This document shows positions 39,093-64,000 of a stretch of DNA of 64,000 bases, one piece after another. A program made the translations under genes and the position numbers. How positions within the stretch are numbered: position 1 is the stretch's first letter; each line of letters opens with the position of its first letter. The stretch is from NCBI RefSeq assembly GCF_000150275.1, contig NW_002060958.1, positions 1,196,088 through 1,260,087 on the forward strand. The letters run 5' to 3'. The DNA comes from Trichoplax adhaerens (taxonomy: Eukaryota > Animalia > Placozoa). Under the pieces are notes generated by a model, which worked only from the letters and a program-made list of their open reading frames with translations, did not search any database and was not told the origin of the DNA.

Positions 39093-39458
39093 TCTTGGAA
39101 TTCTCTTCTACTAACAGACCAAGGTCCAGATCAGACGATGAAGATCTCCAGGTATAGTGTCCAAACTGGACTCCAGAGGAATAGCGTTTAGTACCGTATA
39201 TTGTATGTGACTCAAGATGTCCTACAGTACAGTACTGCAAAACATCAATCGGTAGAATACATACATACGGTAGAGGCAAAACCTCGATGAAATTTGCTCT
39301 CACGTATGCTTGGTAGGCCTTGGGTAAAAGGTAAATCTACGGTTGCCAGGGACTACTAAAGAGAGAAGAGAGCGACTATACTGTAGTCTTGTTGTTGTTG
39401 TTCACTGCCTAAGGTGGTTGGGGATTATCGACAGCGATTGGAGTTCTACTCGTTGATC

Positions 39459-42400
39459 ATGGCAGCCTCCAAATCAGTGGCAATAGTAGGAGGTGGCATT
39501 TCAGGTTTAGCTGCTGCTTTTCGATTAGCAAGACGAACGAGTCCGACTAGTTACAAAGTAACCATTTTTGAGTCGACCGATCGTGCTGGTGGTTGGATCC
39601 AGAGCACGGTAACTGACGAAGGCAACGTATTAGAAGGAGGCCCTCGAAGTGTACGACCAGCTGGATTATCCGGCAGAGCAGCGTTAAATTTGGTAGGTTA
39701 TGATCGCGAACTATGAAGAAACTGACCTTTGCAAACCTTGTACAAATCGATAGTGAGCGAATACTGTACAGGATAGCCAATGACCTCATTAATGACCAAT
39801 ATATTATTTATTTTGAAAGTCCGTAATTGCATTCGGGAATTGTAGTCCTCATCTACTGTCTCATAATCCAATTTTCCCCATTTCCCCAATCAACTTCCCA
39901 ATAGTTTGGATTATAGGCCTTGTTTGGTGTCACGTTCTTCTCTTTGGGGAACATGGGGAAAGTTGATTAGCAGGGGAGACAATTTTTTGTTTAGCAGTCT
40001 CTGCCTCATTGCTGTCATCAATATTGTACCTTTCTTTTATCCCCCAAAATCGAGTTGAGTACGGTAGTATCTGGCAGTACGCCTACAATATTATGAAGTT
40101 ACAGAATAGTCAACTAATCGAGCTGCTGTGGTTACTGTTACTTAGTAGTCTCCGTCTCATTGCTGTCTTCAATATTGTACCTTTCTTTTATCAAAAAATC
40201 GAGTTGACTACAGTGGAACCTGCCAGTATGCCTGCAATATTATGAAGTTACAGAATAGTCAACTGATCGGGCTACTGCTGTACATATCAATCGCAATGAA
40301 ATGTTCATGTTGTTTTACAGATCAATTCTGAAGTAATGTATTCTGTTATATTTCATTCATTACTGCAATGTTACCGCTATTATGCTGTGGCTATTTTGCT
40401 ATGCATTACCACACTAACACGTTATTAAAATCAGGTGTATGAACTTGGCTTGCAAAATTCAATCATTGCAGTGAATTCAAAGCATCAAGCTGTAAGCAAT
40501 CGCTACATTTATGTCTACAACAAATTGCACAAACTTCCATCTGGCTTGATGTCCATGTTGAAGCCAATTTCTCCATTCAGTAAGTCATTAATGTATATGA
40601 TCCTTCGAGATTGGTGGATGCATTACGGGACTAAACCCTCATTGAAAGATTCGGATGAAAGCGTTTATCAATTTTTTCAGCGTCGATTTAGTACAGAGGT
40701 AAAATTTTGGCATGAATTGTAAATGAAAATCTGTATATTGTATACGATGCTAAAAATTAGTCATTCTTTGCTTTACTATGCTACGTACAAATATGCTGCA
40801 AGAGATACATTAGATACTAGTAATTCATGATGATTTAGTAATAACTTATATAAAGTATGACGTTTTCCTAATAGTCTATCATTAGGTCGATTTCATGGGC
40901 GTTCTGGATGATTTTTCTTACTGAATGACTTCGCCAATTATAGTCGTACATCCGTAGTACTGTATTTATCATGCTGTTGATATTCACCTCATATTGCATT
41001 AGTTATGCAACAGTAGTTATATGATAGAATGCACTTAATTCAATCCACATAGTAAGAAAACTGTAGTAAATCTTTAATTAAGTTTAGTAGAACAATTACA
41101 CTTTTAGCGAGTAGATTCAATGATATCTCTCATACCTATGTCAAAATTGTTCTTACAAATTTCGCAGCCAAGTGGAGAACTTCGAACGTACACGTTAATG
41201 ATATTAACCAAATCAATTCAAAGTATACGAATGGTTAATAAACTAGTTATTCAATGTTAAATGTTATTCTTAATACTGTAAATTGGTTACTGATATTACT
41301 GCAACATTGATAAGGTCTCCATGAGAAGAAGTATTTAGCTCTCGTTTGCGATTTCTTTGTTTAAATATAGATGGCAGATTTTTTAGCAGATCCCTTTTGC
41401 AGAGGAACATCGGCAGGCGACGCGCGTAAATTAAGCATGAAAGCATGCTTTCCTCAAGTCGTCAACTACGAAGAGCAGTATGGATCAATTTTAGCCGGAG
41501 CATTACTCGATAAAGCTATTCCAATAAGTGAGGCTGATTGTCCCCTTGTTTATCAAGCGAAGAAAGAACGATGGCGGATGTGGACGCTGCAAAATGGTAT
41601 GGAAACACTGGTTAACGAGTTATTTAAACAATTAACAAAATGTGGAGTTAATATTCAACTGAATACGAAATGCCAGCAAATGTCGTTTTTATCGGATGGT
41701 AAAGTCATGGTAATGGCATTGATATGATATTCGTAATACGTATAGTTTTAAGCAGTATCTGGCATTCGTATGTTTTAAGTATTCTACACGTCTTGACGCG
41801 TAGATTAACTCAAGTGAAGGATTACAGGATTTTGATCACGTTATATGTGCGTTGCCAGCGAAGAATCTTGGTGCAATTCTATCGTCCCAGCATCCGACCC
41901 TTTCTAGTAAACTTTCGAAGATTGAAAGTATAACTGTTGCTGTGGTTAATCTAATTTATGATGAAGCTATTCCAGCTGTAAACGGCTTTGGCCATTTAGT
42001 ACCTTCGATTGAAAGTCCTGGAATATTAGGAATTATTTACGACTCTTGTGGTTTTCCTCAACTGGATTCAAAAACAAAATCTTCGACGCGATTTAGTGTA
42101 AGTTCAATTGTCTTCAAAATAGGATGTGCATTCCGTTATCTGCTTATTGTCCAGAATGCTACGCAATAAATAAATCTAATTATTGTAGTCGATTTTCTCA
42201 GTTCTGTTGTATCGGTTTCTCAATATAGGTGTTGATGGGGGGTGCATGGTTTAGCCAAATCCATAAAGAAAACGCAACAGATGACTATTACATACAAATG
42301 GCAGTGAATGCTGTTCGGAATCAGTTGGGTGTAAAATTAGAGCCATCGACGGTCAAATTATCGATGCAAAGAGATTGCATTCCGCAGTATACAATTGGCC

Positions 42401-42537
42401 ATTTACCTCTTGTTAGGCAGATCTTTGACTATATTGCTATGCATAGCTTGCCAATGTCATTGGTTGGTGCTTCTTATCAAGGTATTGGACTAGCCGATTG
42501 CATACGTAATGCAAATTTAGCTGCTGATAGGATATAG
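39459..42537 (+). CDS. PPOX: Protoporphyrinogen oxidase, 479 aa; exons 39459-39692, 40435-40698, 41371-41709, 41804-42097, 42229-42537
   Basis: FAD-binding VAIVGGGISGLAAA, GGWIQS, EGGPRSVRP, DESVYQFFQRRF, DPFCRG..AGD..LSM..CFP, GFGHLVP, LGIIYDS, VLMGGAWF, CIPQYTIGH, GASYQGIGLADCI. Four phase-0 GT-AG introns give 1440 nt in frame. Confidence 0.96.
39991..40280 (+). repeat. Diverged direct tandem duplication (~150 bp unit, 2 copies) in PPOX intron 1
   Basis: ctcattgctgtc.tcaatattgtacctttcttttatc...aatattatgaagttacagaatagtcaact occurs twice; copies start ~39991 and ~40142. Confidence 0.9.
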
Positions 42538-46065: not shown

Positions 46066-46203
46066 AAAATCCACTTGAAAGTACTGTTTTGGTGAAGAAA
46101 GTGCTGACAGAAATAATTTCGACTGTTAGTTCAATTCAATATTGATACAACTCCACTTGGCGACAACGCCATTCTTGGATAGAAAGAAATCAAAGGTACA
46201 GTG

Positions 46204-48162
46204 ATGCTTTCAGCAACGGATCTACAACAGTTCATCGTCGGTATTTTAACCGATGTAGCAACGTTATATGTTTGCGCATCAAGACAAGAACTGATGCCAT
46301 ATTTAAAATTGGATGACAATGTCATCCATAAAATGAAATCGCCAATGTGGGATGAAGCTGTAAAAACGATGAGTAAATATCCACAAAGTACTTTACAATT
46401 TCCTTCGGGTTATCATAACAGCTTTTCACATAATATTCACTGGCCAACTCAAGCGGTTGTTGCTTTCTTTGATGTGGTACCCGACGAACAAAATATCAAC
46501 GAGCAGGCTGACAACGGCAACAGCAATGAAATGCCGAATGAACTTGCCAATGATGATGAAATGGATGATATTTTCTCAAATGTTGAGGAAGAAATTACCA
46601 CAGACTACAATACCAACTTGTTAACTCCTGGAGAACTATCATCAGCTGTTCTCTCCATGAAATCCAATACCACGGGTGAATTCGATTGGGATTATTGGCA
46701 TTTTGGTAATGATGACACCCCCAACATGCTGCCATTAAATGGTTGGAAAGGCGATGACAATAAAGGCATTGCATCATTGACTGGCAACGCTGTCAATGGT
46801 CTCAACGATGAAGACTCATTCGCGTTAGCTAATATCGTTGATGATGATGATAATAACAATTTGGGTGTGAGTGAAGATTGGTGGGGGCAATTGCCGACTG
46901 ATTTCGTCGATAGCCCAAGCGAAGGATGTAGTAATGGCTATAGAAGTGACGGCAATAATACCGATCAAAGTATCTCACCATCTGTGATTGCTGCCGACAG
47001 CGACAGCAACAGTCGTAGCGAAGCATGGGATCAAATCAAGAAACATATCAATGATGATGAGGTTCTACTTCACTCTATCAATAGCTTAGCATCTCATCAA
47101 AGTTCGCAGGGATTTCTACCATTTATTCCTCCAAATATAGCAGATATTAGCCCTATTTCTCGTAATGGATTTAGTTGGGATCATTCTGGACAAGATGATG
47201 CATCTGGCTTTAATACAAATCAAAACGATTTATTTCACGAATTAGGATTAGAATTAGATGTTCTTGGTAGTCAAAGCAATAATGAAGCTTCCTTACATCT
47301 TAATAGAGATGGACCGCTCAGTATCTCGACCACGAATGATAATCATTTTCTACATCATGGAATACCCAATAGTTCTTTTAATAATGCCACCGGTAATCCT
47401 TATGGTGAGTTCTTTGATCTAATGGGTTTAGATAATCAATCTCCAACTGGCGAATTAAAAGGCGACTTACCTTTCCAACCAATACAAGCGTCCAGAAATG
47501 GAGTTGCTTCAAATGCTAGCCAACCTCATGTCCCACCTTATAGCAGTAGCTCATCCTCTTCAAGGGATGCAGTATATGCGTTATTTACCGATAGCCGCCC
47601 TTACGAATGTAACCCTCAAACCATGGGTGCAACGATGGACATGGGAACTTTTTTCGGTTATAACAATGATGCTATTCGGCTAGAAAATTCCATGGTTGAT
47701 TCTCATCAGGTTGCCAGTCAAAGTCAGCCTATTGGCGAATGGGCGTCTGCTAATGGGACTGTTGTTTATGGTGAGACGCAAAGCGAATTTGCTGAAATAT
47801 TTGGTGTACCAACCAATAGCATGTTAGTTTTACCAGTACCTGAGCGCGAATTAGTTGACATGCCTGTTAATGAGTTTCTAGCCATGATTGAGCGTTTACC
47901 CAGTGATGTTGCAGCCCTTGCTAGAGATGTTAGGAGACGTGGCAAAAATAAGTTTGCGGCTCGTAACTGTCGAAAAAGAAAGATCGACGACATAGATGGC
48001 TTAAAAGATGAAGTAGACGAATTAGAAGTGCAGAAAGAGAGTCTGCTTGCAGAAGTTAAAAAACTCGAAGAAGAAAGCGAGAAATATCGTAAAAAAAGTG
48101 AAGCCATGTACAAGAAAATCGAAAAATATGTAAAAATGAAGGAAGCTAACAATCGATCTTGA
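46204..48162 (+). CDS. Cap'n'collar (CNC) bZIP transcription factor, Nrf/NFE2L family, single coding exon, ~652 aa
   Basis: CNC domain LPVPERELVDMPVNEF followed by basic region RDVRRRGKNKFAARNCRKRK and a leucine zipper (L..EVDELEVQKESLLAEVKKL). Long acidic N-terminal region. An in-frame TAG at 46180 makes ATG 46204 the likely start unless an upstream coding exon is spliced in. Confidence 0.93.
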   Translation: MLSATDLQQFIVGILTDVATLYVCASRQELMPYLKLDDNVIHKMKSPMWDEAVKTMSKYPQSTLQFPSGYHNSFSHNIHWPTQAVVAFFDVVPDEQNINEQADNGNSNEMPNELANDDEMDDIFSNVEEEITTDYNTNLLTPGELSSAVLSMKSNTTGEFDWDYWHFGNDDTPNMLPLNGWKGDDNKGIASLTGNAVNGLNDEDSFALANIVDDDDNNNLGVSEDWWGQLPTDFVDSPSEGCSNGYRSDGNNTDQSISPSVIAADSDSNSRSEAWDQIKKHINDDEVLLHSINSLASHQSSQGFLPFIPPNIADISPISRNGFSWDHSGQDDASGFNTNQNDLFHELGLELDVLGSQSNNEASLHLNRDGPLSISTTNDNHFLHHGIPNSSFNNATGNPYGEFFDLMGLDNQSPTGELKGDLPFQPIQASRNGVASNASQPHVPPYSSSSSSSRDAVYALFTDSRPYECNPQTMGATMDMGTFFGYNNDAIRLENSMVDSHQVASQSQPIGEWASANGTVVYGETQSEFAEIFGVPTNSMLVLPVPERELVDMPVNEFLAMIERLPSDVAALARDVRRRGKNKFAARNCRKRKIDDIDGLKDEVDELEVQKESLLAEVKKLEEESEKYRKKSEAMYKKIEKYVKMKEANNRS

Positions 48163-51100
48163 ATGAATGTTCCAATGTGATGCCTATCTTAAGTTCCTGT
48201 AGTCTGAAGAACGATTCTTTTTAATTAAAGATCCTATTTGAAAAACATCGTACTAACAGCATGTTGATAGCATGGTAGACAACAATCGTAGTAGCTGTTG
48301 TACCAAATATGATGTTAACCTTTGTGTAAAACACTACGTGGCGACAGTTTGTTAATATTGTATGCAGACGCATTCGTTATGAACTTTTAATTCATAAAAT
48401 ACATTTACATATGTATTTATCAACATTTTATTTTTTTGGTCGCCAATGGCAGTATCAACCCATGTTTGATCATAAAAATTTACTTTGAAGGCCTTATTAT
48501 TGGACTGAAAGATTTTAACTGTTAAGCATGTGTTGAAATCTTCAGCAAGGCATAAGATATCTAGAATAATGATATCTGGTGCTTTGGTTATTATCGTATA
48601 TAGAGTTTATCTGTTTTCCTGGCTCAGACTACAGCATTGGTTCTAAGGCGAACAATCGGCAACTTTTGATTTAATGTACATAACATTTTGTTGCAAATCG
48701 GCTATGCGCTATTACTTCTTGCCGTTTCAACTATAAAATTGACTATACTAGCGTTTACGGTTAGCCGTTGTTACCTATCTTTATATGAAATGGATTGAAG
48801 TTGCTGTCATGAAATAGATATGTGCATCTTTCTAGTATCAATAATTAATAGTAAGATGAAAGTAGACAAGTTATGCGTATACATATTTTGGTATTGCTTC
48901 TGCTGTTACTTGTTATTAGGTCAATAATATTGCTTGTATGAATTTATCTAAGTCTTGCTTTCTAATTATGATTACTTAGCAATGTCATGCCAGCATTATC
49001 AAATTCAGAATATGATAGAATTGTTTCTTTATCGATAATCTATCATGTTAGTTTTTGGTGATATAAATCCAATAGTTTAAGTCTTTATTTGTTATCGATA
49101 CTTAGTATCGCTGATAACTTTAGAACTCTTTGATCGACAATAATAAAATTAGCTGCTTTTAAGCGGTCTTAATGTATTCAGGCATTGACTAATTATTCGG
49201 CTTTGGGAGGCTAGGATATCCTCGATTGATTTTCATTACTGCAAAGAGCATACAAGGGCTAGAGGATTACAGTCTTGTAAATAGGATGCCACAGGAAATT
49301 ACATCACTATGTAGCCATTTTGCAGTTATAGAATTAATTTTGGGAGTTTTAGTTACTGAACCGCTGTTGTAAATTGCTATTCATTCCGTCAAGTTAACTA
49401 TCTTGGGTTAATTTGTTCAACTTTTATCAATTCTGTATGTAACATTTACGTTTTATCGTCAATAACGTACAACTGTTACAGATGCCTAATTTTACTTTAG
49501 CTAAAATTTAAAATACTTTGATAGCAGTTCTATCATACCATTATTAGCTGCATACTTTGCTCAAATAAGGCCGTAAAGAAAACGTAGGTTACTTTTTGGA
49601 TGTACGGCTCTGTATTGATAACAACATCGTTGCAGTTTAAGCAAATATCTTGCACTTGATGCGACAGGATCTATCAGCGATCTCTTGAGAATTTATGGAA
49701 TGAGTTTGCAAGTTAGACGGCAGGGGTAAATCGTCATACAGCGTTAGAGGAAGTACTTAATTATTTTTCATTTAAGAATTGGGTAACGGAATCATTTATT
49801 AACTGCTGAATTATGAATCTTTGAAATTTCGTCTACGCCATGCACTACAGATTCAGTAGTCTATGATATTGGAGCTATAGCGCTTACCGTTTCTGCTTGC
49901 TACCAGCTTTTGCATTATATACAGTACTTTAGTTTCGAAAATGTAACATATACCCTAACCTAAACTCAAATCATGCAATAGATTTTACTGTAGTGCATAA
50001 TCTGGAGCTGAGTAGAGAATAACGAAACATTATTGAATTTACTTGCCATGGCGTGTCTATTAACTCTCGCTAATTGTTATATTCATATAGCATGCAAATA
50101 GGTTATCTACTCTCTATTGCATAAGTTGTTTTGGTCTTAGAAATTTGCAGTTATTAACAAGTCTGTTGCTATCTTTCATCATTATTATTATGCTGTACTT
50201 TTCTCCTATATATATAAACATTTTCAGTAACTGCATTTATAGTATCAGCTTATGTTGCACAATACATATTACCTTGGATCACACACAGTATTGTATTGCA
50301 CGAAATAAATTACCGCAATTAGATCTAGTGACCAGAATAATGATGAAAATCAAAAAATTACTCACTGTCCTTTACGATAGGATCAAATTTTGTCCTCAAA
50401 GTACTGAACGTAATAATATTTATTCGATCAGAAGACCGTATTCATAAATCATACTCATAAACTTACATTATTGCAATTAGCTAACTTTTATTTGACATTT
50501 GGGCGAAGTAATATTTTCGGGACAACTGTCAGCGATGCAGTAATATTGTTTCTAAAGCAATATTTATATGGCTCCATGCCTATCATAACTTTATTTTATA
50601 ACAATAAAATGCAAACAAACATCGTGTTTTTTAAACAAATAAATACCAATGATAGGAGAAAACGGTTTTCTTTCAATTAATTGAAACAAATATTAGTTAA
50701 TTAAAAAATGCGGTAGTAAAATAGTTGCATGATTTAATGGTATGACTAATGACTGGAAACCATTGAGAATAATTTATCCTCTCTAAAATAACCTTAGTAA
50801 GTTTATTGTTATGTATTAGGCTAGCGTCACATTTGTTCTTATTTAAGTCACTTTGTCTGTGTTATGCCTTTTATCAAATTATAGATAATAGGAATAGGAA
50901 CTCTTGACAACTGCAGCATGATACTATAGTGTTGGACTACCTTAATATAAGCATGAAAGAAAAGGTACAACAATTTAATTACCATACTAAACTTTGCAAA
51001 GCAATTTTATTCAAATAAAGTACGTAAGTATCCTTAAATATACAATCACGTAGCTACAGACATTGAGGCGCATGCTAAGGGTAAATGGCTTCATGATATC

Positions 51101-51634
51101 AAATTTGTCGTATAGCAGTAATAGAGGCAACAACTTGTCATTTTTTTTTAGCTCTAATGTACATTTAAGAATGTGAGAGATTTCTACAATCAGATCGGAA
51201 ATTCCTTTTCTTGGAACAACAATCGAATCGCTAGAAGGGCTAGTTTAAATACTACGGCATTCATCACATCTTAATTTGTTTTGTAATTTCGAATCTGAAT
51301 CCATTTTAGTACCGAAGATTGCAAGATTTCTTAACATAGATACAGGTCAGTCCTAGATACAGCTAAGAATAAAATTTGGTTCACTTCCACTGCTCTTCGT
51401 CTATCATGCTGATTATACTGTACACACGCTTTCTAAAATATCTTAACTAGTTGTAAACCATTTCCTGAGTAACCTCCAGCATGACGATACTAATGGCCGT
51501 CTTAGAACTACTGCAGTTTAACTTCCAGCTCACTATGACTATTCTGGACTGTCTACTATCCGCTAAACTAATTGATTGAATTCTCCATGGTGACGGCAGT
51601 TACTATACCAGGTCCAGTATGTCACATCGACTTT

Positions 51635-51780
51635 ACTGTACAGTGTACAGTGTACAGTACAGTACCTCCATAAAAGTGCAAGTACTGTAATGTAAATACT
51701 GTACTGTACACAGTGTACAGTACAGTAGCAGTAGTACAGTACAGTACTGTACAGTGTACACTGTGCACTGTACGTTACTG
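51635..51780. repeat. Low-complexity cluster of TACAG/CTGTA/TGTACA motifs with nested palindromes
   Basis: tactgtacagtgtacagtgtacagtacagtac ... tactgtactgtacacagtgtacagtacagtagcagtagtacagtacagtactgtacagtgtacactgtgcactgtacg. Confidence 0.85.
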
Positions 51781-54700
51781 TGCTTTTATAGCACTGACTG
51801 AACAGTATTTAGTCCAACATTCCCATGCGCTTCTGTAGTGTCGAATCTCATTACTGTAACTGAAGGACTGTAACTGGCGGAAACCGACTTTCCCTGGGTG
51901 TTTTCCTTGTCAAATTGGAAGACATTTGAATGGTTTGGTTTTATTACAGGACATTTTTATTCAGAGAATTGGATAATAGGTAAGAAAAGTTGAAAATGAT
52001 ATAGTAATCTGATCTAGATGAAATTACTCTTATCCTTGTAATAACTGAAATTAGCGTATTTCGTCTGTGAAGTATAAGAGATTCAATTACATTGAACGCG
52101 GCGGCGCCAATAATGTCGTGATATTATTCTTTGAGCATTTCAACTTGGACGCATATTGTCGATGCGTAATATGAGAGTCCGTCGAGAAAAGTTTTCCTGT
52201 AGTACTTTGTGCTAAAGCCAATCTTACGAGCGCTGTTTCTTACTGTTGAATTTCCACTTTTACCAATGCCTTTGAAAATATAGTAGGCTAGATGTGCATT
52301 TAACTGCAACGCTACTGACAATGCCCACCTCTTTGCTCAAGATATCTGTACTGTCATTTGTAATGCGTTTTCCTTTACTAAGCAGTACACTACTCTACTG
52401 TATATCAGTGGGCTTGATGATTCATTTCTGAACTGGCAAGTTATGAAAAAGTCAGTACAATGAATGGACATTTACACTAGGGATGGATATTCGAATTAAC
52501 GATTGGCCTACTCTTTACCTTCAAGCATACACTTTACTGCCGTACTTTGAAAAAGGTGAATTGGCCATTTCAATAGGAAAGAAAGGCATTGCACGTGCGT
52601 AGAATGCATTCCTGCATAATACGTATCCGTATCGCGCGCTCTATCACTGTCAGTACTGAGCAAGCATAACTACTTATAAACATTCACCGACAGTTCAACT
52701 GCAGAACTTGGGTAGAAGGCTCTCTTCAGCTTGAAAAAAACAAGACATCATTTTACTCCCGCACCTTTTTTTCTCTACAGCCATTTTTTTTCTTAGCATC
52801 AGTAATTTGCAACCTCCTTATTCACTCCGACGAGATTTTTAACAATGGAGATACTATGGATCATTCACCTAACTATGCTGTCAAGCATTCCCTACCTAGT
52901 TGACCGTTTCAAAAATTTTCTGTGAAGGATTACGCCAGTTGTGCATCAAGCTACAATTATCAACATACCCCATTTTAATCATCGTATAGTATGCAATTAG
53001 AACATTCAAGGCACTTCTTTCTTAATATATAATCAGCACACACGGTGTCTATAGACTTTTCTCTCTGTGGTAAAAATTGATTACAAATTCGGCAAAAGTT
53101 GTTGGTTGACCTGCTTTGATGATAGTGTGATTCATAACGAGTGAAGCGAATAGTAACCCGAATCACAAAATAGTCGTACTACAATATGCTATTGTGTCAG
53201 ACGGACGGAGTTACGATGGTGACAGGTTGCATCCACCTTTTTATGACGATAAATTGAATTTCTTCCGACACTGGTTCAACCATAGTTGAGATTCGATGCC
53301 AGTTCTTTGCAGTTACAAAGTAAGCAATGGGACTTCTTTGAATAATCCTTGACTGACCTGCATCAGAATCAATCGCCGTATACAGTAGTAGCTTTCGTAG
53401 TTTCCTAAACGATTGTAGGACTTTCCTTGAAAGTACATCTTTTGATGTTTGTCTATTTGGTTATTGTTGGTGTGTGTTGTTATTGTTATTATTTTTCTCC
53501 CACAAGTCCACAACTAACGAACTAGTCCTTTTAGAGTATTTGAAAGTTCATATACAATTTTGGGTCAAGTGGTAATGGCTAGAATGTCGCACATAGGGTC
53601 TATAAATACAGCAGGATTAGTGACTTTAATAGTGGTCTTATTTGTCGTAGCTACAAGGGATCTTTGCTTTTCTGCTTGTTAAAACTAGTCCATTTCAATG
53701 ATCTCGTAAATTCACATCAGATGCTTATTTTGATTACGATTTGGAAAGTGTCAATTCAGAGTTCCTCTGTGTGAAGATAGGGGCCTCACACCTCACTACA
53801 AGAATAATTAATATTTGTTTTGCATGGCTCTGTAGCATATCTGAAAGTAGTTGGGTTATAATTTGAGCATTCCAGTTCATTAATTAATCTGTAGTTTACA
53901 ATACCGACTTCTTAATCGGATTATTACTATTTATTATATTCGTATCTTATTTTGTACGTCGAGTGATATTTGGTTTTTGATGGAAAATTTATAGAATAGA
54001 CCATTAGTATCGATTAAAAACAGCCGACATTTCAACAAATCCGAAATGCTGTATGTTGGATTAAATTGGTTAATCGTTTAATTAGCAAACTCGATACGAG
54101 TATGTTTTCATTACAACCGAAGTTACAGCGATGCTTTTAATACCGATAAAAATAAAGTTACTCGCAAATTTATCAATTGATTCATTTCAGAGATAACTAT
54201 GATATTTCGTAGCCCAACTATGCCAAGTAAAAAGTTTTCATCAATGATTCGCCTTGCTTTGTATGTACAGTTTGAACTCGCGACTTTTATTCTCGATACC
54301 AGTTATACGCTACGCCGATAATAGCTGACTACCTCTGTATCACCCGATACGAAATCGCATTAGCGTAGAAGTTAATTTTTGACAATAATAATAGCTCATT
54401 ACTGCTTTGCCGCACGCTGCAAAATTGTGCTAGATTAGAGCTTAAATTTTATAGAGTTAACACGCTGTACGATATGTAATGCTCGATCTTTTGCTGTCCA
54501 TATTACAGTATTCGCCGTTATCATCAAACCATAACATTTTAATGGGTTATTATTGTAAATTTCTTAATGGAAGGCTTTAAAGATGTAACTATGCCTACTG
54601 CATGATAATTGATAACCCTTGCACGGGTGGCCAAATAACCTAATACATAAAGCACTTCCTTTTCATTCGTGCACAATTTAGCAAGTTTAGCGGTTACACC

Positions 54701-54863
54701 TAAATGCGTTAGATAGTGACGCTACATACAACCGCTTTGTTTGACAAAACTATAATAACTACATCGTTTACAATCAATAGTGCGATCGATACTTAATTGC
54801 TATGCCTGGATATTTTTTTCCGATCTTATAGTGCTAGATTTAAAGAATAACAATTTACAAACA

Positions 54864-56700
54864 ATGGATGAAGGATCTGCGGAATTTGAGGTTGAAGAAA
54901 TTGTCGATGATAAAATTATTAATGGGGTTCAATATTATATGGTGAAATGGCTTGACTATTCAACTACGGAAAATACGTGGGAGCCTGCGGATGGTTTAAG
55001 TAATTGTCAGGAAATTATTAATGAGTACCGGGAACAAAAGTCTCACGTAGAAAAAAAGACCATAAGTGCTAGTAGTCGTCGATCGTCAGGTAGTGTAAAA
55101 GTGAAGACAGTAATTCACTAAGATAATGAAACTAAAATAAATCGATTATGTAATAGCCGCAGTAAAATAGGTATGCAGATTTTTAAGTTACTGCTGTGTG
55201 AGGTTAGCTGTTATAGCTTAATAAATCAACGTCATCTCGGTAACTTAAAACTTATCTGTAATGATAAAGATTAAATTATGTTGATTCTCTTTATGTGGTA
55301 AATAAATTTAATTGACCAGGTTACGCTGACTCAGTAAAAGTGGATTTGTATTGTAAGAGACTAATATGAATACATACTTGTTTTTGTAAGGATCGGATAG
55401 TATAATTACTAGCAAAAGAGCCGCATCAGATAACAACTCTATTTCCAGTAGTAAGAATGTGAAAAGAAAGAAAGTCTCCAGCGATAGTCGATCCTTGAAT
55501 GAAAAGGTAACATTTTAGCTATTTTTAGTTACGTTATTTCATTACCAATTGGCATTACTATTGTACTTTACCTTCTTAAGACAAGTACTTTGGCATCACT
55601 TAGATACTCCCTCGTAACAGTCTTTAACAATGTACTAATGTCAGTCCCTACTATCCATTTTATGCTGATAATTCATCATCTTCTGCTATGAATAAACGGT
55701 ATTTACCACGCGTAATTAGATTCATGACATGTTCATTCTTTGGAGTTATGTCCACGGTTGCATATATACTGTAGACTCTTTCTCCGGCGATGTTCCGCAA
55801 ATTATCTAAATACGCGTATAATGATGCTAGCTGTTATAGCTAATTAAGATTCAATTAGCATATTTGAATTTTGGCGAAGAGTTTGGAGAATTTAACTCTG
55901 TTTTATATTTAATTCCGCAAGTATGCTTGGACTCTATCGTCTTAGTAAATATAGACACCCTGATATATTGCTTTAGGAAATAAATTCACATATAGTTTAT
56001 TATTAAATATTTTAAGTAAATAGCAAATAAGGTATGAATGATGACTGCATGGTTTTGTACCTACGTACGCATAATTAGTTTATATATCAGTCATGCTCTA
56101 TATCCTAACGATCGATTGTAACGTGTATGTATTGTGTTGATAATAATTTGCACCAGATAAAAGCGAACTTGAATAACAATCATAATTCAGAAGACGAAGA
56201 TAAATTATCGGTCGATGATGATGGGGGAAGCACAAGTAATAATACGGATAAATTGCAGGCTCCTCTACTAGATATGCAAGCTGAAAGGAATAGAAATGTT
56301 AAAAGTAAGGCCAAATCCAGCGTTGGTAATCGTAACTTGGTAAAACTTAAGGGTAAAGGAAATGGAAACGAAGCCGATGCTTCAATAACAGCAACAGCGG
56401 AGAAGATTTTAGGAGCAACTAAGTCGAAAGGCAAATTATGGTTTATGGTTAAATGGTAGGTTTAGCATTCCATAATTTTGCGATTTCATTATTATGGATT
56501 TTGCTAAATGATGTATTCGAATTTGTAGGAAGAATAGCAGCAACATCTCTGTTATGCCGTCTGAGAAAATGAACAAGGCTTACCCACAATTGGTTATACA
56601 ATTTTACGAGGCTCGCATAGTTTGGCTACAAAGTTGTGAATCTAACGATTCTGACGATGGCGACATTGGCATGAGTAACCAGAATAAATTTATACCTTGA
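54864..56700 (+). CDS. Heterochromatin protein 1 (HP1/CBX1-3-5 family), paralog A, 270 aa; exons 54864-55089, 55391-55506, 56157-56455, 56529-56700
   Basis: Chromodomain EFEVEEIVD..YYMVKWLDY...ENTWEP..L.NC, basic hinge VKRKK, chromoshadow AEKILGAT...LWFMVKWKNS...NKAYPQLVIQFYEARIVW. GT-AG introns in phases 1, 0, 2; 813 nt in frame. Confidence 0.93.
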
Positions 56701-58952
56701 GGTAAAAAAGTTGACTATCTGCAATTGCTGTTTATCGCCTAGATGACTGATAAAATCAGGCTGATTGCTATTTTCTATTTCTTACTATAGACTATGATCG
56801 TAGCTGACTAATAAGATCAACTATGCAACGGGCTGTTTTGTATCAAATGTTGCTTCTGTAGTTATAATGTTTCGGTCTTACTAGCAACATATATCGGTTG
56901 CATTGGTGACTTAATGCTGGTCAGTATTGTAATTTTCGTATTCTCAATGCTGTACTTAACATAATGTTGACGTTTTTGCTCGTTTCCGAGCATGGTATTG
57001 AGATATTGACACTTATTGATGACTCCGTCAGTATTAGTATTGTATATTAATCATCATTATACTTGGGCTGATACCTTTACACTTTTGTTAATTCGAATAT
57101 GATTTTGAGTTTTTTGATGTGCTCGTACTTGCATATCTTTAATGTTATACTAATGATGGTTACTGTAAATTTTACGAAGTTAACTGTAAGTTCTTGAACT
57201 ACGTTACTTGAATGACTAAACTTTTTTGTCAACAATTTTTACTAATGTTCTAAACAAAAAATTCCGTTCATACTTTATTTAACTAAAATCTAACGTGATA
57301 CGTTTGAAATCCACTCGTGTCCAAACATGTACAGTACATGTAAATATCTAATTTTTTATTTATACTTATTCGAGCAATAAATCGTTGTAGTCAATACATG
57401 ACATTCGTTACCAGCTAATTATAGGTGTCGTAATTGTGGATGTGTGACAATCTTATTGCTAAATATGCATGGGATTACAATGGGGACTTTATACTGTACA
57501 AAACATAGGTGTGGCTACCAGCTAAAGGCTTCATTGGGCACCTATTCTGTCGCTTTTGGTTGGAATACTTAATCAAGTCTGTAGTATCCTATTGTTGATG
57601 AAAAGTTATTATAGATTAAAACGTTACAGTGGTACATGAAAGATATACTTTTGAAATATGTGAGAAAACTAGGTCTGCATGCAGGCGATCGTAGAAAGAT
57701 ACTTGCCTGTAAGGGTAGAATACTATAATTTCGAGATCTACAATATATCGAAGGTATATTTGTATATCAAGCACCTTATTACATAATATCTATGCCACGG
57801 TGGCATAAACCTCTGGGATACTTGTATTTAATAGATCTTACTTACGTACTGTAGGTTTAATGGGATCACTAACTTATCAGTCTTTTTAAGATGAAGTATT
57901 AGTTATTAATTAATTATGTAAGAAAGGCCTAACGATAGTTTCACATATTCATGAGGGAAGAGTTAAGTTGGGTACGATATTATATGGTAAGTAAAAATTT
58001 GAATCGAAGGGTACTTTTAGTTAGCATTATTAAATATATAGAATTTTTAATCGAATTTTAAAATAATAAAGTTAATTTTCGAAAAAGTTAAATCTCTACG
58101 GTAATATAGGTGTTTCCATGATGTTTATTTATGGTGATAGGTTTGCACTATTAGTGTTCGGTTATATACTTCCAATAAATTTTACTTTCATACTGTATCA
58201 TGGATATTCATTAAATGTGGAGTCCTAAAGGCATTTTACAAGTACTGTAATTTGTAAGTTATCTTTCCATTTTATCATTAGCAATACCGTTTATTGTATG
58301 GTGCATTAATAATCAAATATTATCATTAATCAAAGGACGATTTACTGTAGTACCGAGGACAGTAGCGGTAGTAGACTGGAGTTTGGTATTTTTGCTGATA
58401 CAACTAATACTTTGGACGTTCATTAACTTTATAATTCCCTAATATAGTATTGGCGATGTCGTGGGTTTATTATTAATATTCTAATATACGCATTATTTTA
58501 TTCCATTTTGAAAATAATGATCTTTTGCTTAATATGGTATTCTAATATTGAAGTCATCATAAACGACATTGCTAGTAAGAGTTGTATCGTAATTTACGAT
58601 TTTCCAACCAGGGACTTTGCACCTGTACAATATATAAATATGCAGCACTGTATTTTGCATGGAATAACAGATCGAACAGAACTATTTTTGGAGTCTCCGT
58701 TGCTGATTTCTTATGTCTATTTATGTCTGCGTAGGTAGAATGCAAGCCATTGACGCATTGATTAAATCACTATTAAAAAAGTAACTGAAGGTTTAAAGTT
58801 ATGGTAGATTGTAGCTTTGCCCGAAATCTTTTTCGTATTCGAGTATTGCCCTGCGATGCAGATTTTGTAGCCAATTAAATGTGATTGGTAAGGAGAGAAA
58901 ATTAACTATTGGTAACTATTGGTTGTGAGTTGTAATATCCTTGAAGACAATC

Positions 58953-60500
58953 ATGGAAGGCGAGAGTGAAGAAGCTGAATTCGAAGTAGAAAAGATTATG
59001 GATCATCGTGATGTCAATGGTACAATTTTTTATTTGGTGAAATGGTGTGGTTTCCCAAATAGCGATAATACTTGGGAACCTAGGAATGGATTAGTTAATT
59101 GTCAAGAGGCCATTAAAGAGTATCACACCTCACTCAGCCTCGGTAAAAAAAGAAAACGAATGTATAAACACTTGTCTGAAGAAGTCCAAGGTCAGAATTA
59201 TCACCACATCTGGGCAACATACGATTACTAGATCGGAATTATTCGTCATCCTACTTTTATAATGTTTAACGCAAATGAAATATTCGGTCTTTTTTGATAT
59301 TGAAGCACTTTAAAGTGGATTTAAAGAATAAAAATTGAAGGTTATTTTAACGCCACGACATTGAATGTTTTCTTGCTTTTTGCAGGTGATAAAAAATCAA
59401 TGAAGATGGATCTCACTGTTAGTGTTGACGAGAATATACAATCATTAACCTGCATGCAACGTAACCAACAACTCGAACAACAGGTAAAATTATATTTTAT
59501 GCTTGGCATGTTGTTTTAGACTTTCTTTAATCTTGGCTCCACCTAATAATTATAGATACCGTAGTAAGAATTGCCTGAGCCAATATTTGCAATTACCTTG
59601 TGCATTTCCTAATATTTACGACTTAGGATTTTTCCCGAAATTGTTAAGAATGTCTCATTACCATCCACTTGCCATACTGTACGTTCCTGAAATTAAGCTT
59701 TAATTTGCCGATACAGATTTTTTTAGAAGCTGATTGCCGCTAATTCACATTACCAGTTTTTTTAATTTAAATGATTTGGCAAAGACACTTTAACACATTA
59801 AATTAATTTTAAGCTGTATAGGATTGAATATTGCAAAATTTTAAATCTAGCTCTCGTAATATCAAATCTAATACTGACATTATTTTTATTCCGTACTATA
59901 AGTTATTGTAGATCTTACGTTAACTGTATGTTATATTTTTATGACATTCCTCTGCGCTCTACACTGATGTATAGCAGATGCTATGCACAGCCTATACTAC
60001 TACTTTATACGGTGATAAAGTATCCGCATCGTCTTAGATCCCTAGTTTTTCGTTAACACGGCAGTAAATCACTAAAGTATCGAAAAATATTTTCTTCGCT
60101 AATTTTGTTGCAATTTGCAGAACTTTATGCGGATAAAATCCAAGAAGCCTGACAAGAAAGTGCTATTTGATGGCTGCTTACAGCATACAGATGCAGAAGC
60201 AGAAGAAATTGTAGCCGCCAATAACGATACAGGACGAATACGTTTTCTTGTTAAATGGTAAATAACAATAATACAATAGTAGTAGAAAAATCCTGCAATT
60301 GTGTTAATACTGAACAATGACTTAGATCTATATATTTGTTTAATCCATATTCTTTTCCGTTAAATATGGCCGTCATTTGTAGGAAAAACTGCCAGCATAT
60401 CACGATTTTACCTGCCTCAGAAGCAAACAGTAGATTTCCTTGGCTAGTGATTAAGTTTTATGAAGACAGAATCGCCTGGAAAAGTACGAAAAGTTGGTGA
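58953..60500 (+). CDS. Heterochromatin protein 1 (HP1/CBX1-3-5 family), paralog B, 196 aa; exons 58953-59190, 59386-59483, 60121-60257, 60383-60500
   Basis: Chromodomain EFEVEKIMDHR..FYLVKWCGFPNSDNTWEP..L.NC, hinge KKRKR, chromoshadow AEEIVAA...IRFLVKWKNC...EANSRFPWLVIKFYEDRIAW. GT-AG introns in phases 1, 0, 2; 591 nt in frame. Confidence 0.92.
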
Positions 60501-61069: not shown

Positions 61070-62177
61070 CTAAGAGTCTTCAAAGATGGTATGTTGAGCA
61101 GTCTTCATTTGTCCAGCAGCCTGTTTGCGAAAGCATTAATATGATTGAGACATTAGATGATTAAAAGTATCCTTGGATAATAATTTTTTAGGTAGGGTCA
61201 ATTGACGGGGATTGAGTACTTATTGAGAAAGGTTTTAAAGTACAGTTAACTTGATTATTTATAATATGTATATGAGGATATCGTTTGAGCTATGTTGTGG
61301 ACAATTTATAGATTACTGTCAGTTAAAGTTATCACGAAAAAGCAATTTACTTACATAACCAGGGAATTGGTAGTCTATTCCAAGTTTTTGTAACTTTTTC
61401 CTACGAACATTTTCGGCTTTAATTAACTTATTCACTACTTTGGTGTTCTCTTGATCTGTTTTCGGCTTCATAATTTTGACAGAATGAATGAATTAATAAT
61501 TAATTAATGTCAATGATAGTACGACAAGATTAAAGCCTTAGACAAATAATACAGTAAAAATACTAGTAGTTAGTTATCCATCAAAATCAATAATCACTAT
61601 TTCGTGGTTAACTGATTGAAAAATGTCATTCCTCTGTCTTTAATAAATTTACTTACTGCATTCGCTTGTTTCTTGGCTAACTCTCTCCAGTTAATTTTGC
61701 GAAATTTTCGGTTAGCACCTTTAAAAGTTTCAGGGTGAACCGATTCGCTTTTCATTAATTGACCTATAGATATGATCAATATCGGTTACGTTTATAGGCT
61801 TGATTTAAAAATGCTAACGTAACAGTTAATTTTTTCCCTATAAATTTCATTTACACGAGTAAGAAGTGCTCGCTATTAACTAGTCCTACTTGAAATATAC
61901 AGAATAGCCCTAAGCATGTAGATCATCATTCGTACGCACATTTTAATAATCTGCCACACATCATATAATTATTCATCGTTTCCGCTACAATTGTAGCTAC
62001 ATCTTGATTCGAAAATTCGATAAATGCATAACCACGCGATCGACCGCTTCTTTTACTGCGTGATAGCCTAATTTTATTGATGTCGCCAAACTGTGAAAAG
62101 AATCCTTTCATTTCCTCTTCATAAAATCCATGAGGAATGTGTCCAACGTAGATTACACCAGGTTGTACATTATCTGC
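61070..62177 (-). CDS. NIFK: NIFK/MKI67IP (Nop15) nucleolar RRM protein, 3' part; exons 62177-61940, 61763-61657, 61465-61355, 61120-61070; 5' exon(s) not identified
   Basis: PGVIYVGHIPHGFYEEEMKGFFSQFG..RLSRSKRSGRSRGYAFIEF...VA.IVAETMNNYMMCGRLLKC, VHPETFKG and KKLQKLGIDYQFPGY are NIFK/Nop15 signatures. Splice phases are consistent. Confidence 0.92.
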
Positions 62178-62897
62178 CTATTTTATGAATTGATCACAAA
62201 CATTATGAACCTTTCTAATTCAATACCAAATTCATACCTACGGTTTAACTCTTACGATATCGTGTAATATTTAATAAATGAAATTTTTATATATATAATT
62301 ATGCGTACAAAATATGATATCGGATGTCAATACTGTATAGTATTTCTAGTAGGGTATTGACAGACCGTATAATGATTGTCCGGGGCTTAGTCTTGCGATA
62401 AGTAATGGTATTCTGAGCAACTTTAATACTAATTCAATCAAATGCTTTCATACCATGAATCCTACAGACTCTAACTATATATGTATTGATTAAAATCTCA
62501 TCAGCAGCTGTATGAACTTCGAGTTTACTGTTAGACACTCTCCTCAATGGTAGCTCCTCTTACAGTTCAGTATCATTGACTTTTGATAACTTAGACGTGA
62601 AATCAACTGCATTTCAAGAAAGTAGAAGACTTTGATAGAGGTTCTCCTGAGCTCGGCTATCCAATAAAATTGGCGACATAATAACTACTAAGGATTTTAT
62701 AGAATCCTAGTCAGCTCCTGGCTAGTCAATCTCTTCAATGGTTGGTCTCTTATGGTATGTCCGGTAGCATAGATCAACTGTAATTGTGTCCTACTTATTG
62801 AACTAAAAATGTCATAAGTATCAAGTGTACATGAAGAATTTGAAGACGTTGGTAAAACTCTTTTAAGCTCGACCTGAAGGTAAATGAATCATTTCAC

Positions 62898-63960
62898 GAT
62901 AGATTAAGCATCTTGAATATTACTAACATTCGTTCCGTTCTGTGGTCGTCAAGAACTGCAGTTACTGTGTACGTGCTCTACCAGCGAGCTCCACGGGTCG
63001 CCGTGATGGGCGGTATTCTACATAACCATACAATCAACTCTCACTACTTCTAACTTTTACATGATATCAGGTCATAATCCTGCAAAGTCAGTTAAACTCA
63101 CTCAGGTATATTTCGAGAAAGTAATCGTGCACATTCATAGCGTGATAGATTAAGCATTATGACTATTACCAGTATTAAAATAATTAGTTTAATTAGTTCC
63201 TTCCTTGGTCGTCAAGAGCTGAAGCTGCATGTGCGTTACTAGCGAGCTCCCTAGTAGCCGTGCTAGAATCAACCCTGACTACTTCTAACTTTGATATTAG
63301 GTAGATTAAGAAAGTGATCGTGCTGATGAAGATAGTGATAGATTAAGTAACTTGAATATTACCAACACTACAACAATTAGTTCCTTCCTTGGTCGTCAAG
63401 AACTACAGCTGCATGTGCGTTACTAGCGAGCTCCATAGCGGCCGTGCTGGGTAGTATTCTACATTGCCATAGAGTCAATTGCCACTACTTGAAACTTTTA
63501 CATGATATCAGGTACATTTCAAGAAAGTGATCGTGCTCATTAAGATCAGTATTCTACATTATCATAGCATCAACCCTTGCTACTTGTAATTTTTACATGA
63601 TATCAGGTATATTAATAAGAAAGTGATCGTACTCATTTACATTAGTATTCTGCATTACACTAGAATCAACAACCTTCACTATTTCTAACTTTCACATGAT
63701 ATGAAGTAAATTAAGAAAGTGATCGTGCTGATTAAGATTGTGATAGATTAAGCATCTTGAATATTACCAACATTACAACAATTAGTTTAATTAGTTCCTT
63801 CCTTGATCGTCAACAACTACAGCAGCATGTGCTTTACTAGCGAGCTCCATGGTGGCCGTACTGGGCAGTATTCTACATGACCTTAGAATCAACTGTCATT
63901 ACTTCCAACTTTTACATGATATCAGGTATATTATCAGAAAGTGATGGTGCTCATGAAGAT
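62898..63960 (+). repeat. Complex diverged tandem repeat (~190-250 bp modules with ~95 bp sub-duplications)
   Basis: gatagattaag at ~62899, 63145, 63337 and 63742; ggtcgtcaaga..agcgagctcc four times; ttttacatgatatcaggta and aagaaagtgatcgtgct recur. Confidence 0.92.
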
Positions 63961-64000
63961 TCTTCTGAGCTTAACCTTACTATAACTCAACAATATACTG

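Follow-up and report, generated by a model that had tools for sequence, protein, structure and literature searches.

A CNC-bZIP gene of the placozoan Trichoplax adhaerens is followed, on the same strand and across a 6.7-kb spacer, by a tandem pair of HP1 genes (HP1-A and HP1-B; all three on the + strand), and the scaffold carrying them holds an excess of gene families that flank the vertebrate HOX clusters (HOX-flank families). Quite probably, this CNC-HP1 locus represents a relic of the ancestral gene order and not a functional system. According to this interpretation, a single pro-orthologue of NFE2/NFE2L1-3 would lie directly upstream of a pro-orthologue of HP1 (CBX1/3/5) on the same strand, and the HP1 gene would later have been duplicated in tandem. 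The CNC-to-HP1 adjacency would date back to the ancestor that placozoans share with bilaterians and would have been kept mainly through slow rearrangement at the locus in placozoans and vertebrates, not through a mutual need of the genes. The window, by which we mean the whole stretch of 64,000 nucleotides analysed (T. adhaerens scaffold_16:1196088-1260087), would then lie inside the placozoan counterpart of the bilaterian Hox-bearing neighbourhood, here without Hox genes ('ghost Hox locus'). The observations consist of gene identities, copy numbers, order, strands and distances, together with the excess of HOX-flank families on scaffold_16. The features are as follows, with H2 denoting Trichoplax sp. 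H2.

39414..42537, + strand: upstream neighbour, protoporphyrinogen-oxidase-like flavin amine oxidase gene (PPOX; Pfam Amino_oxidase, NAD_binding_8)
46204..48162, + strand: CNC-bZIP (Nrf/cap'n'collar) gene, single exon, 652 aa (Pfam, PDB, H2 match)
47824..48120, + strand: CNC homology region and basic leucine zipper, residues about 542-640 (NRF2 alignment 542-622; bZIP_Maf 548-636)
48163..54863, no strand: spacer without recognisable gene, 6.7 kb (ORF, tRNA and Rfam screens; H2 annotation)
54864..56700, + strand: HP1-A, 270 aa, four exons (Pfam Chromo and Chromo_shadow, splice sites, H2 model)
54864-55089, + strand: HP1-A exon 1, chromodomain (Pfam Chromo 2.3e-16)
55391-55506, + strand: HP1-A exon 2, hinge (splice sites and phases read from the sequence)
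56157-56455, + strand: HP1-A exon 3, hinge and chromoshadow start (Pfam Chromo_shadow, splice sites)
56529-56700, + strand: HP1-A exon 4, remaining chromoshadow (Pfam Chromo_shadow, splice sites)
58953..60500, + strand: HP1-B, 180 aa or 196 aa, four exons (Pfam, PDB, intron phases)
58953-59142, 59386-59483, 60121-60257 and 60383-60500, + strand: HP1-B exons (intron positions and phases as in HP1-A)
61319..64000, - strand: downstream neighbour, RRM gene, continuing past the window end (Pfam RRM_1 8.5e-17)

The open reading frame at 46201-48162 (+ strand) matched Pfam bZIP_Maf (1e-16, residues 548-636) as well as bZIP_1 and bZIP_2. Because residues 2-653 of this frame align, with 99% identity, with the 652-aa H2 protein annotated as 'Segmentation protein cap'n'collar', the true start of the CNC gene is the ATG at 46204. 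In comparison with PDB, the best match was NRF2 (1.3e-14, over the CNC region and basic zipper), followed by NF-E2 p45, BACH1 and SKN-1, whereas MafB, at 7e-5, was far below NRF2 at 1e-14. The NRF2 chain 7x5e_B aligned with residues 542-622, including a stretch upstream of the basic region, and a CNC homology region, by which the CNC-bZIP family is recognised, precedes the basic leucine zipper. A full HMMER search against 1.84 billion representatives gave as named top matches NFE2L1/2/3, NF-E2 p45-like or cap'n'collar proteins without exception, and these came from a cnidarian, sponges, echinoderms, molluscs, arthropods and fishes; a word-index protein search with the CNC domain returned the H2 counterpart alone. 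The predicted protein appears to be closest to CNC proteins and not to Maf or other bZIP proteins. Five matches were obtained in a genome-wide bZIP_Maf scan, that of the CNC gene being the only one in a long open frame (659 aa), and two stronger matches on C1414 are taken by us to be Maf genes. As judged with one of the five matches examined, the gene at 46204..48162 appears to be the only CNC-type gene of the genome.

Domain and structure searches for the HP1 genes were run exon by exon. Both HP1-A and HP1-B were found to encode a chromodomain at the N terminus and a chromoshadow domain at the C terminus, the combination that characterises the HP1 family, and the Chromo_shadow domain is split by an intron in both. 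The exons of HP1-A total 813 nt, corresponding to 270 aa, the same length as the Chromo and Chromo_shadow gene annotated in H2 (270 aa), and HP1-A exons matched those of H2 at 90% and 100%. HP1-B gave Pfam matches to Chromo (6.4e-19, exon 1) and Chromo_shadow (1e-9), and an alternative donor of exon 1, ending it at 59190, lengthens the product from 180 aa to 196 aa. In PDB, HP1-B matched HP1, CBX5, CBX1 and CBX3 at 1e-14 to 1e-13, with CBX7/2/8/4 at about 1e-5, and HP1-A matched Clr4 first and then HP1; a word-index protein search gave a single fragment for the chromodomain exon of HP1-A. The aromatic cage, as read from the translations, is F/W/Y in HP1-A and F/W/F in HP1-B, and the two chromodomains, with the cage kept, are HP1-type rather than Polycomb-type. 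Chromoshadow matches in the whole genome (105.6 Mb) were two, namely, HP1-A and HP1-B, both in the window.

The preliminary description of this DNA had the CNC gene followed by HP1 genes with no recognisable gene in between, and this was confirmed by the Pfam and PDB identities, by the empty spacer and by H2. Within 48163-54863, protein-like ORFs were absent apart from an 87-aa ORF without match, tRNA and Rfam families were not found, and a short GTACA-type repeat was located at 51697-51755. It is hardly credible that the CNC and HP1 genes were joined by misassembly or that a gene between them was overlooked. The 2008 assembly of T. adhaerens is indeed scaffold-level with gaps, including an N run at about 10950-11230 of the window, but there were no N runs within 44000-64000, RNA genes were not found in the spacer, and no gene is annotated in the equivalent spacer of H2. 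Furthermore, H2, with its independent assembly and annotation, has the same CNC/HP1 arrangement and is collinear with T. adhaerens in a single 19.8-kb block with 98.8% identity, which spans PPOX, the CNC gene, the spacer and HP1-A; the CNC-spacer-HP1-A layout is, therefore, not an assembly artefact. As for the immediate neighbours, the PPOX-like gene, of which the H2 counterpart is an annotated Amino_oxidase gene of 479 aa, is outside the HOX-flank set, and the RRM gene downstream of HP1-B is the only RRM match on scaffold_16. The latter is tentatively regarded as NIFK-like on our own reading of its sequence, with a weak lead to hNIFK_binding clusters.

The preliminary description further proposed that the window may lie in the Hox-neighbour linkage group, and this was borne out at the level of the scaffold. 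The list of HOX-flank families combined genes named in that description with families chosen by their human map positions, and one vertebrate block (nfe2l3-cbx3-PX) was checked directly. Five of the 15 informative families (COPZ, lunapark, Mnx, CDK5RAP3 and AGPS) are on scaffold_16, that is, on 1.55% of the genome, resulting in a P of 2.3e-6. The enrichment was retained without Mnx and COPZ (3/13, P = 9e-4) and with single-locus families only (2/4, P = 1.4e-3). COPZ follows the CNC gene at a distance of 30 kb, five genes away, and matches solely coatomer zeta-1 in PDB (5e-13); between HP1 and COPZ, there are three unrelated genes, which are the NIFK-like gene, an MDH1B-like gene and CLASP, the identity of the last as a scaffold_16 neighbour having been checked. 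Mnx follows the CNC gene at 51-60 kb. AGPS (PDB matches solely to AGPS, 1.9e-18), lunapark (the only match in the genome) and CDK5RAP3 (with a single locus genome-wide) are no more than 350 kb from the CNC gene, and so are one JAZF1-like gene and GAD/CSAD-like genes in three copies, both of these families having been found later, outside the pre-set list. Inspection of the flanks for the genes suggested beforehand was successful in part, with COPZ and Mnx being on scaffold_16 but hnRNP A, SNX10/11, MTX2, Evx, Dlx and Sp not being there. Altogether, 10 of the 15 families are absent from scaffold_16, including hnRNP A, the published partner of CBX3 (PMC3514665), and this was counted against the relic reading. 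CALCOCO, secernin (Peptidase_C69) and integrin-alpha were undetected genome-wide in the six-frame search and were counted as uninformative. The first 0.55 Mb of C1410 was considered as a second fragment of the neighbourhood (ATP-synt_C, UDG and Tom37) and was dropped, the ATP-synt_C pair being likelier to represent a two-repeat V-ATPase proteolipid.

No homeobox had been visible in the window to the preliminary description, and the whole-genome homeodomain scan agreed with it, the nearest one, Mnx, being located 44 kb beyond the window end on a scaffold without a Hox-class gene. The Mnx homeodomain is at C1399:1304435-1304605, C1399 being scaffold_16, and it agrees in coordinates and sequence with the published Mnx of T. 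adhaerens scaffold 16. The scan placed just Mnx and NK-related2 on this scaffold, and no Hox, Evx, Gbx, En or Dlx gene was found there; T. adhaerens Dlx is on scaffold 33, Not on scaffold 24 and Gsx on scaffold 38. NK-related2 is a derived ANTP-class gene 15 kb past Mnx, with PDB matches to a mix of engrailed, DUX4, BarH-like, Hex, even-skipped, Tlx, Dlx and Gbx, by which no class is assignable. Mnx, an extended-Hox gene, followed by NK-related2 resembles the extended Hox ('SuperHox') neighbourhood of cnidarians and bilaterians (PMC2515636, PMC10719294), although Hox, Evx, Gbx, En and Dlx are missing from scaffold_16.

A Trichoplax 'ghost Hox locus' was reported by Mendivil Ramos, Barker and Ferrier in 2012, as described in PMC3694477 and PMC6486804, and the main message of this analysis is, therefore, not new. 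In PMC6486804, following that work, such a locus is defined as one without Hox genes that has a significant number of non-Hox genes with bilaterian orthologues near Hox clusters, and scaffold_16 presents both features, being Hox-less with the excess of HOX-flank families given above. The fit to the ghost locus that was anticipated for a placozoan held, in view of the organism being a placozoan, the excess and the lack of Hox genes, and it agrees with PMC3694477. Scaffold_16 and its HOX-flank genes are expected to be part of the locus published in 2012. It is a speculative suggestion, which we regard as improbable, that CNC-HP1(-COPZ)-Mnx goes beyond a passive relic and represents an ancestral block of placozoans and bilaterians that narrows the ghost locus to ~60 kb (COPZ to NK-related2), with NK-related2 as a degenerate survivor of the Hox/Evx type, so that the locus would not be quite empty.

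With respect to vertebrates, the human arrangement is NFE2L1 by CBX1 (near HOXB), NFE2L3 by HNRNPA2B1 and CBX3 (near HOXA) and NFE2 by HNRNPA1 and CBX5 (near HOXC), with COPZ adjoining NFE2/NFE2L1 on the NFE2 side, whereas Trichoplax COPZ is on the HP1 side, a difference that counts against the relic reading. The likeness of the Trichoplax locus to the vertebrate block, represented as NFE2/NFE2L-(HNRNPA)-CBX1/3/5-SNX10/11 with COPZ1/2 beside NFE2/NFE2L1, lies in the CNC gene being followed by HP1 on the same strand with COPZ close. It differs in that scaffold_16 is without a Hox cluster, hnRNP A or an SNX10/11-type PX gene, and in that HP1 is tandemly duplicated and separated from COPZ by the three unrelated genes. 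The teleost Synchiropus splendidus has a Chromo and Chromo_shadow gene 2.7 kb downstream of nfe2l3, on the strand of nfe2l3, and a PX-only gene after it. Cbx, Hnrnpa and Nfe2 also serve as Hox-syntenic genes in vertebrates (PMC10927551).

In other animals, the adjacency was found in part of those inspected, being present in two Trichoplax species and one teleost but not in sponges, a hydrozoan or a mite. The informative non-placozoan invertebrates were three sponges, the hydrozoan and the mite, and neither annotation nor tblastn revealed an HP1 gene in the 10 kb inspected around the CNC gene of Oscarella, Corticium, Sycon, Hydractinia and Oppia; Anneissia, Babylonia and one further animal, in which the CNC gene had no neighbour within 10 kb, were left out of the count. 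Because of these five loci, tight adjacency is shown only for placozoans and vertebrates, and it could have arisen after the linkage or by a chance encounter within the linkage group. The preliminary description was prepared to abandon the ancient conserved linkage if the adjacency was absent in other invertebrate lineages and the scaffold was, in addition, not enriched for HOX-linked genes; both were required, and the refutation fails because scaffold_16 is enriched. 

We consider it unlikely that the two genes became neighbours in Trichoplax independently of vertebrates, through local shuffling inside a conserved linkage group. In line with such shuffling are the five invertebrate loci, the position of COPZ with respect to CNC and HP1, which is unlike that in human, and the loss of most microsynteny in cnidarians that have kept macrosynteny (PMC10719294). 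As a rough estimate, ~10 adjacent pairs common with human would be expected by chance genome-wide, given strong macrosynteny. However, the chance that a named gene is next downstream on the same strand is about 4e-5 with about 11,500 genes, and it is 0.025-0.1% within a linkage group of 500-2000 genes, while order and strand at the Trichoplax locus equal those of teleost nfe2l3-cbx3. Moreover, COPZ, a neighbour of NFE2/NFE2L1 in human, is five genes away, and there are five further HOX-flank genes within 350 kb, which argues for a retained local block and not for a random order.

It is still less probable that the CNC and HP1 genes, perhaps with COPZ, form a block maintained by selection through common cis-regulatory elements or a chromatin domain. 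The survival of the pair in placozoans and in as many as four vertebrate paralogons, one of them checked in a teleost, is compatible with such a block, as is the HNRNPA2B1-CBX3 pair, which is conserved and strongly co-expressed (Irimia et al. 2012, PMC3514665) and involves the same HP1 family in the same vertebrate region; the CNC-HP1 pair is unmentioned in the main text of that paper. On the other hand, the genes have a tandem and not a head-to-head arrangement, with 6.7 kb between them, and the pair is missing at every informative invertebrate locus examined. The HNRNPA2B1-CBX3 pair itself is missing in Trichoplax, where the hnRNP A partner is off scaffold_16 and the sole RRM gene of the scaffold is the NIFK-like one past HP1-B. 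The interpretation of the locus as a relic of ancestral gene order is the one that we retain.

Conserved neighbourhoods of Hox loci are the main evidence in the debate over an origin of Hox genes before placozoans and sponges, with subsequent loss. This analysis provides a fine-scale view of such a neighbourhood in Trichoplax, in which the apparently sole CNC gene is beside the whole HP1 family, and COPZ and Mnx are no more than 60 kb away. In order and strand, the locus agrees with a vertebrate HOXA-side block, and no further invertebrate phylum among those inspected shows the tight CNC-HP1 adjacency. The locus supports the published ghost-locus view without changing it and offers a sharply bounded interval for new chromosome-scale placozoan genomes.

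The CNC-bZIP gene of the window and the two HP1 genes downstream of it, HP1-A and HP1-B, were modelled as follows, the HP1 splice sites being read from the sequence.

46204-48162, + strand: CNC-bZIP gene, a single open frame of 652 codons
54864-55089, 55391-55506, 56157-56455 and 56529-56700, + strand: exons of HP1-A, 270 aa
58953-59142, 59386-59483, 60121-60257 and 60383-60500, + strand: exons of HP1-B, 180 aa (196 aa with an alternative donor of exon 1, ending at 59190 in the same phase)

The last 100 residues of the CNC protein matched Pfam bZIP_Maf (1e-16), bZIP_1 and bZIP_2. Its best solved-structure match was NRF2 (1.3e-14), which took in both the CNC region and basic zipper; NF-E2 p45, BACH1 and SKN-1 were also among the best matches, and MafB reached only 7e-5. 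In a search of 1.84 billion representatives, its best relatives, where named, all bore CNC names: NFE2L2-like in Hydractinia and Sycon, NFE2L1-like in Anneissia, Acanthaster, Haliotis and Babylonia, NF-E2 p45-like in Oscarella and Corticium, cap'n'collar in insects and a mite, and NFE2L3 in fishes. Six-frame scanning of the complete genome indicated bZIP_Maf at five places, that of the CNC gene being the only one in a long open frame (659 aa); two stronger matches, side by side on another piece of the genome (C1414), were tentatively read as Maf genes and the remaining, weak pair as other bZIP genes. The chromoshadow domain had only two matches in the same kind of scan, both inside the window. 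We take the genome's sole CNC gene to neighbour its entire HP1 family, and the putative pro-orthology of these genes rests on best-hit patterns and single-copy status.

Searches with the spliced HP1 models took each exon separately, never a joined protein, and Pfam Chromo matched the chromodomain exons at 2e-16 (HP1-A) and 6e-19 (HP1-B). The chromoshadow domain is interrupted by an intron in both genes. Because their intron places and phases (1, 0, 2) are identical and their chromodomains are about 58% identical, HP1-A and HP1-B are old tandem duplicates. Compared with Trichoplax sp. H2 (H2), a second placozoan assembly with its own annotation, T. adhaerens differs at 7 of 67 residues in the HP1-A chromodomain exon (54864-55089 vs L003:18645-18845; L-numbers denote fetched stretches), whereas the CNC protein is 99%, the HP1-A chromoshadow exon 100% and the overall DNA 98.8% identical; one of the duplicated HP1 chromodomains may be evolving fast.

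The CNC gene is separated from HP1-A by a 6.7-kb spacer (48163-54863), and all three genes lie on the same strand. A frame screen of the spacer gave no protein-like ORF save one unmatched frame of 87 aa, tRNA and Rfam searches of it were both empty, and a short GTACA-type repeat was its sole feature in the repeat and RNA searches. The H2 annotation gives, in order, a 479-aa amine-oxidase gene, a 652-aa 'Segmentation protein cap'n'collar' and a 270-aa Chromo+Chromo_shadow gene, and calls nothing between the latter two. Over this stretch the two genomes align as a single block of 19.8 kb with 98.8% identity. The succession of CNC and HP1 genes with no recognisable gene in between, as first read from the sequence, was thus confirmed, and it is not an assembly artefact.

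The repeat belongs to a simple satellite of the GTACA/GTACAGTAC type (window 51622-51838) that is found repeatedly between genes along the scaffold (L005:6400-7700, L023:5250-6580, L024:5250-6660 and L026:2450-3080) and gives rise to long frames that are spurious and abound in T, V, L, Y and C. Elsewhere in the window, positions 1-38000 have 26-31% G+C and almost no long frames, the gene-rich part from 38 kb has 32-40% G+C, and around 10950-11230 there is a run of N.

In other animals, 10 kb either side of CNC genes was inspected. The locus of the teleost Synchiropus splendidus has a 165-aa Chromo+Chromo_shadow gene 2.7 kb downstream of nfe2l3 and on its strand, with a 208-aa PX-only gene next in line. 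This annotated locus bears out the vertebrate arrangement given in the preliminary description, and its nfe2l3-HP1 order and strand are identical to those in Trichoplax. The flanks at five other invertebrate loci were as follows.

Oscarella lobularis: kinase-CARD gene upstream, Pyridoxal_deC gene downstream
Corticium candelabrum: CARD gene and SMARCC-like gene
Sycon ciliatum: Branch glycosyltransferase and Med1
Hydractinia: Fic gene and two unnamed genes, downstream 10 kb empty
Oppia nitens (oribatid mite): second CNC gene, CSE1L, NPRL2 and RAD23

In Anneissia, Babylonia and one further animal, the CNC gene had no neighbour inside 10 kb. When the Trichoplax chromo and chromoshadow exons were searched by tblastn against all inspected loci, only the H2 and teleost loci matched. 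The adjacency, which had been put forward as an ancient linkage, therefore held in placozoans and vertebrates and was absent within 10 kb in the three sponges, Hydractinia and Oppia; among the loci inspected, tight adjacency is limited to the former two groups. The two CNC-type genes of Oppia stand in tandem (L033:2154-4134 and 10001-13687). The Oscarella decarboxylase (L030:11819-14021) lies 0.3 kb downstream of CNC, with ABI, tetraspanin and NEMP genes after it, and is 58-69% identical to the GAD/CSAD-like genes on the Trichoplax scaffold, so that a linkage of CNC to this family is common to a sponge and a placozoan.

The genome comprises 105.6 Mb in 1414 pieces, and the window occupies C1399 (scaffold_16):1196088-1260087. 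We fetched 230 kb around it and read long frames for neighbouring genes; these and the further genes located on the scaffold are as follows.

C1399:898.8 kb: lunapark, the genome's only such gene
C1399 about 1085-1087 kb: AGPS, upstream of CNC; PDB matches AGPS only (1.9e-18)
C1399:1090078-1090950 (L024:4078-4950), - strand: JAZF1-like zinc-finger gene, single exon, upstream of CNC and adjoining AGPS
C1399 about 1142-1160 kb (L017:6738-7082, L018:4341-4616, L019:3596-3895): three tandem GAD/CSAD/GADL1-type decarboxylases, 83-100 kb upstream of CNC
Window 61319-64000 and L004:24-326, - strand: NIFK-like RRM gene, first downstream of HP1-B (tentative name, weak tool support)
After the NIFK-like gene: MDH1B-like dehydrogenase (Ldh_1_N and Ldh_1_C)
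L004:3959 to L005:3942, - strand: CLASP, after the MDH1B-like gene; PDB matches CLIP-associating proteins 1 and 2
C1399:1278.6-1279.6 kb: COPZ, after CLASP; PDB matches coatomer zeta-1 only (5e-13)
C1399:1295.6-1304.7 kb: Mnx, after COPZ; homeodomain 1304435-1304605; parts at L001:4114-4683 (C1399:1304114-1304683) and L007:5629-6117, with a likely first exon about 8 kb upstream
L002:4815-5066 (C1399:1319815-1320066): NK-related2, at 1319836, a derived homeobox of the ANTP class that lies 15 kb beyond Mnx
C1399:1470.7-1473.9 kb: CDK5RAP3, the genome's only such gene

Mnx lies 44 kb past the window's end, and its homeodomain is identical in sequence to the published T. adhaerens Mnx and agrees with it in coordinates ('#16 - 1304432-1304611'; PMC2515636 Table S1), where 'NK-related2' is given at '#16 - 1319833-1320012'. 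These agreements identify C1399 as scaffold_16 of T. adhaerens Grell-BS-1999. In NK-related2 the WFQNR motif has Y where W is usual, the PDB matches are a mixture of extended-Hox and NK-like types, and the end may be formed by an intron or by a helix 3 that is cut short. The JAZF1-like gene carries Pfam zf-C2H2_aberr and had as its best Atlas cluster 'juxtaposed with another zinc finger protein 1', with a very high score. Human JAZF1 lies near HOXA and human AGPS near HOXD. The NIFK-like gene and CLASP are two genes apart, human NIFK and CLASP1 are close neighbours on 2q14, and these may form a second small conserved pair. Two near-identical ankyrin-repeat exon sets (L009:850-4446 and L010:6373-9824; C1399 about 1325.8-1344.8 kb), with a channel-like exon in L011, suggest either a recent tandem duplication of a TRPA-like gene or a stretch duplicated in the assembly.

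Enrichment of scaffold_16 (1.55% of the genome) was assessed for gene families whose human members lie near HOX clusters. The list joined the families of the preliminary description to others of human 2q31, 7p15, 12q13 and 17q21, and was set before most searches, Mnx and COPZ being already known by then; the human positions were taken as background, not computed, which is the weak point of the test. As a result, 5 of 15 informative families (COPZ, lunapark, Mnx, CDK5RAP3 and AGPS) were on the scaffold (P = 2.3e-6 for at least 5), all five genes at most 350 kb from the CNC gene, and the proposed placement of the window in the Hox-neighbour linkage group was thus supported. Without Mnx and COPZ the count was 3/13 (P = 9e-4), and with single-locus families only it was 2/4 (P = 1.4e-3). 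The JAZF1-like and GAD/CSAD-like genes were found later and stand outside the test.

Among the genes that the preliminary description had named for the flanking scaffold, COPZ and Mnx were present, and hnRNP A, SNX10/11, MTX2, Sp, Dlx and Evx were not. Six-frame family scans of scaffold_16 gave no SNX10/11-type PX, metaxin or hnRNP A, its sole RRM being the NIFK-like gene; these absences are tentative, as such scans can miss short exons, and family matches lay on other scaffolds. Dlx was on scaffold 33 in a genome homeodomain scan, and Sp is on scaffolds 15 and 3 (PMC3087555). ATP synthase subunit c, PNPO, SNF8, SMUG1/UDG and PDK were likewise elsewhere in the genome in family scans, off-scaffold matches being counted at the level of the family; CALCOCO, secernin, integrin alpha and Evx were undetected genome-wide in such scans and left out of the count. 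ATP-synt_C, UDG and Tom37 matches occur at C1410:81902-83327, 360364-360690 and 549216-549320, all in the first 0.55 Mb of that piece, and the ATP-synt_C pair may be V-ATPase proteolipid, not mitochondrial subunit c. The 2012 analysis of the ghost locus reportedly used neighbours exactly of the kind found on scaffold_16.

CNC and HP1 could be adjacent by a chance meeting, in line with the absence of the pair at the five other invertebrate loci and with a rough estimate that, where macrosynteny is strong, about 10 adjacent pairs should be shared by chance across the genome. However, order and strand are as in a vertebrate, the chance probability is 0.025-0.1% even within one linkage group, and COPZ is only five genes away; we therefore lean towards an adjacency that was itself inherited. 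We saw no evidence for functional coupling of the CNC and HP1 genes. They stand in tandem with 6.7 kb between them, and scaffold_16 appears to lack hnRNP A, whose co-expression with CBX3 has been published (PMC3514665).

Studies of vertebrates use Cbx, Hnrnpa and Nfe2 as standard 'Hox syntenic genes' (PMC10927551). Since the ghost-locus idea is published (PMC6486804, PMC4539518) and our literature search found no paper mentioning a CNC-HP1 pair outside vertebrates, we see the pair as a small addition to a main message that is known. Taken together, the stretch is likely what remains of an ancestral neighbourhood, the one in which bilaterians have their Hox cluster; in Trichoplax it holds no Hox gene.
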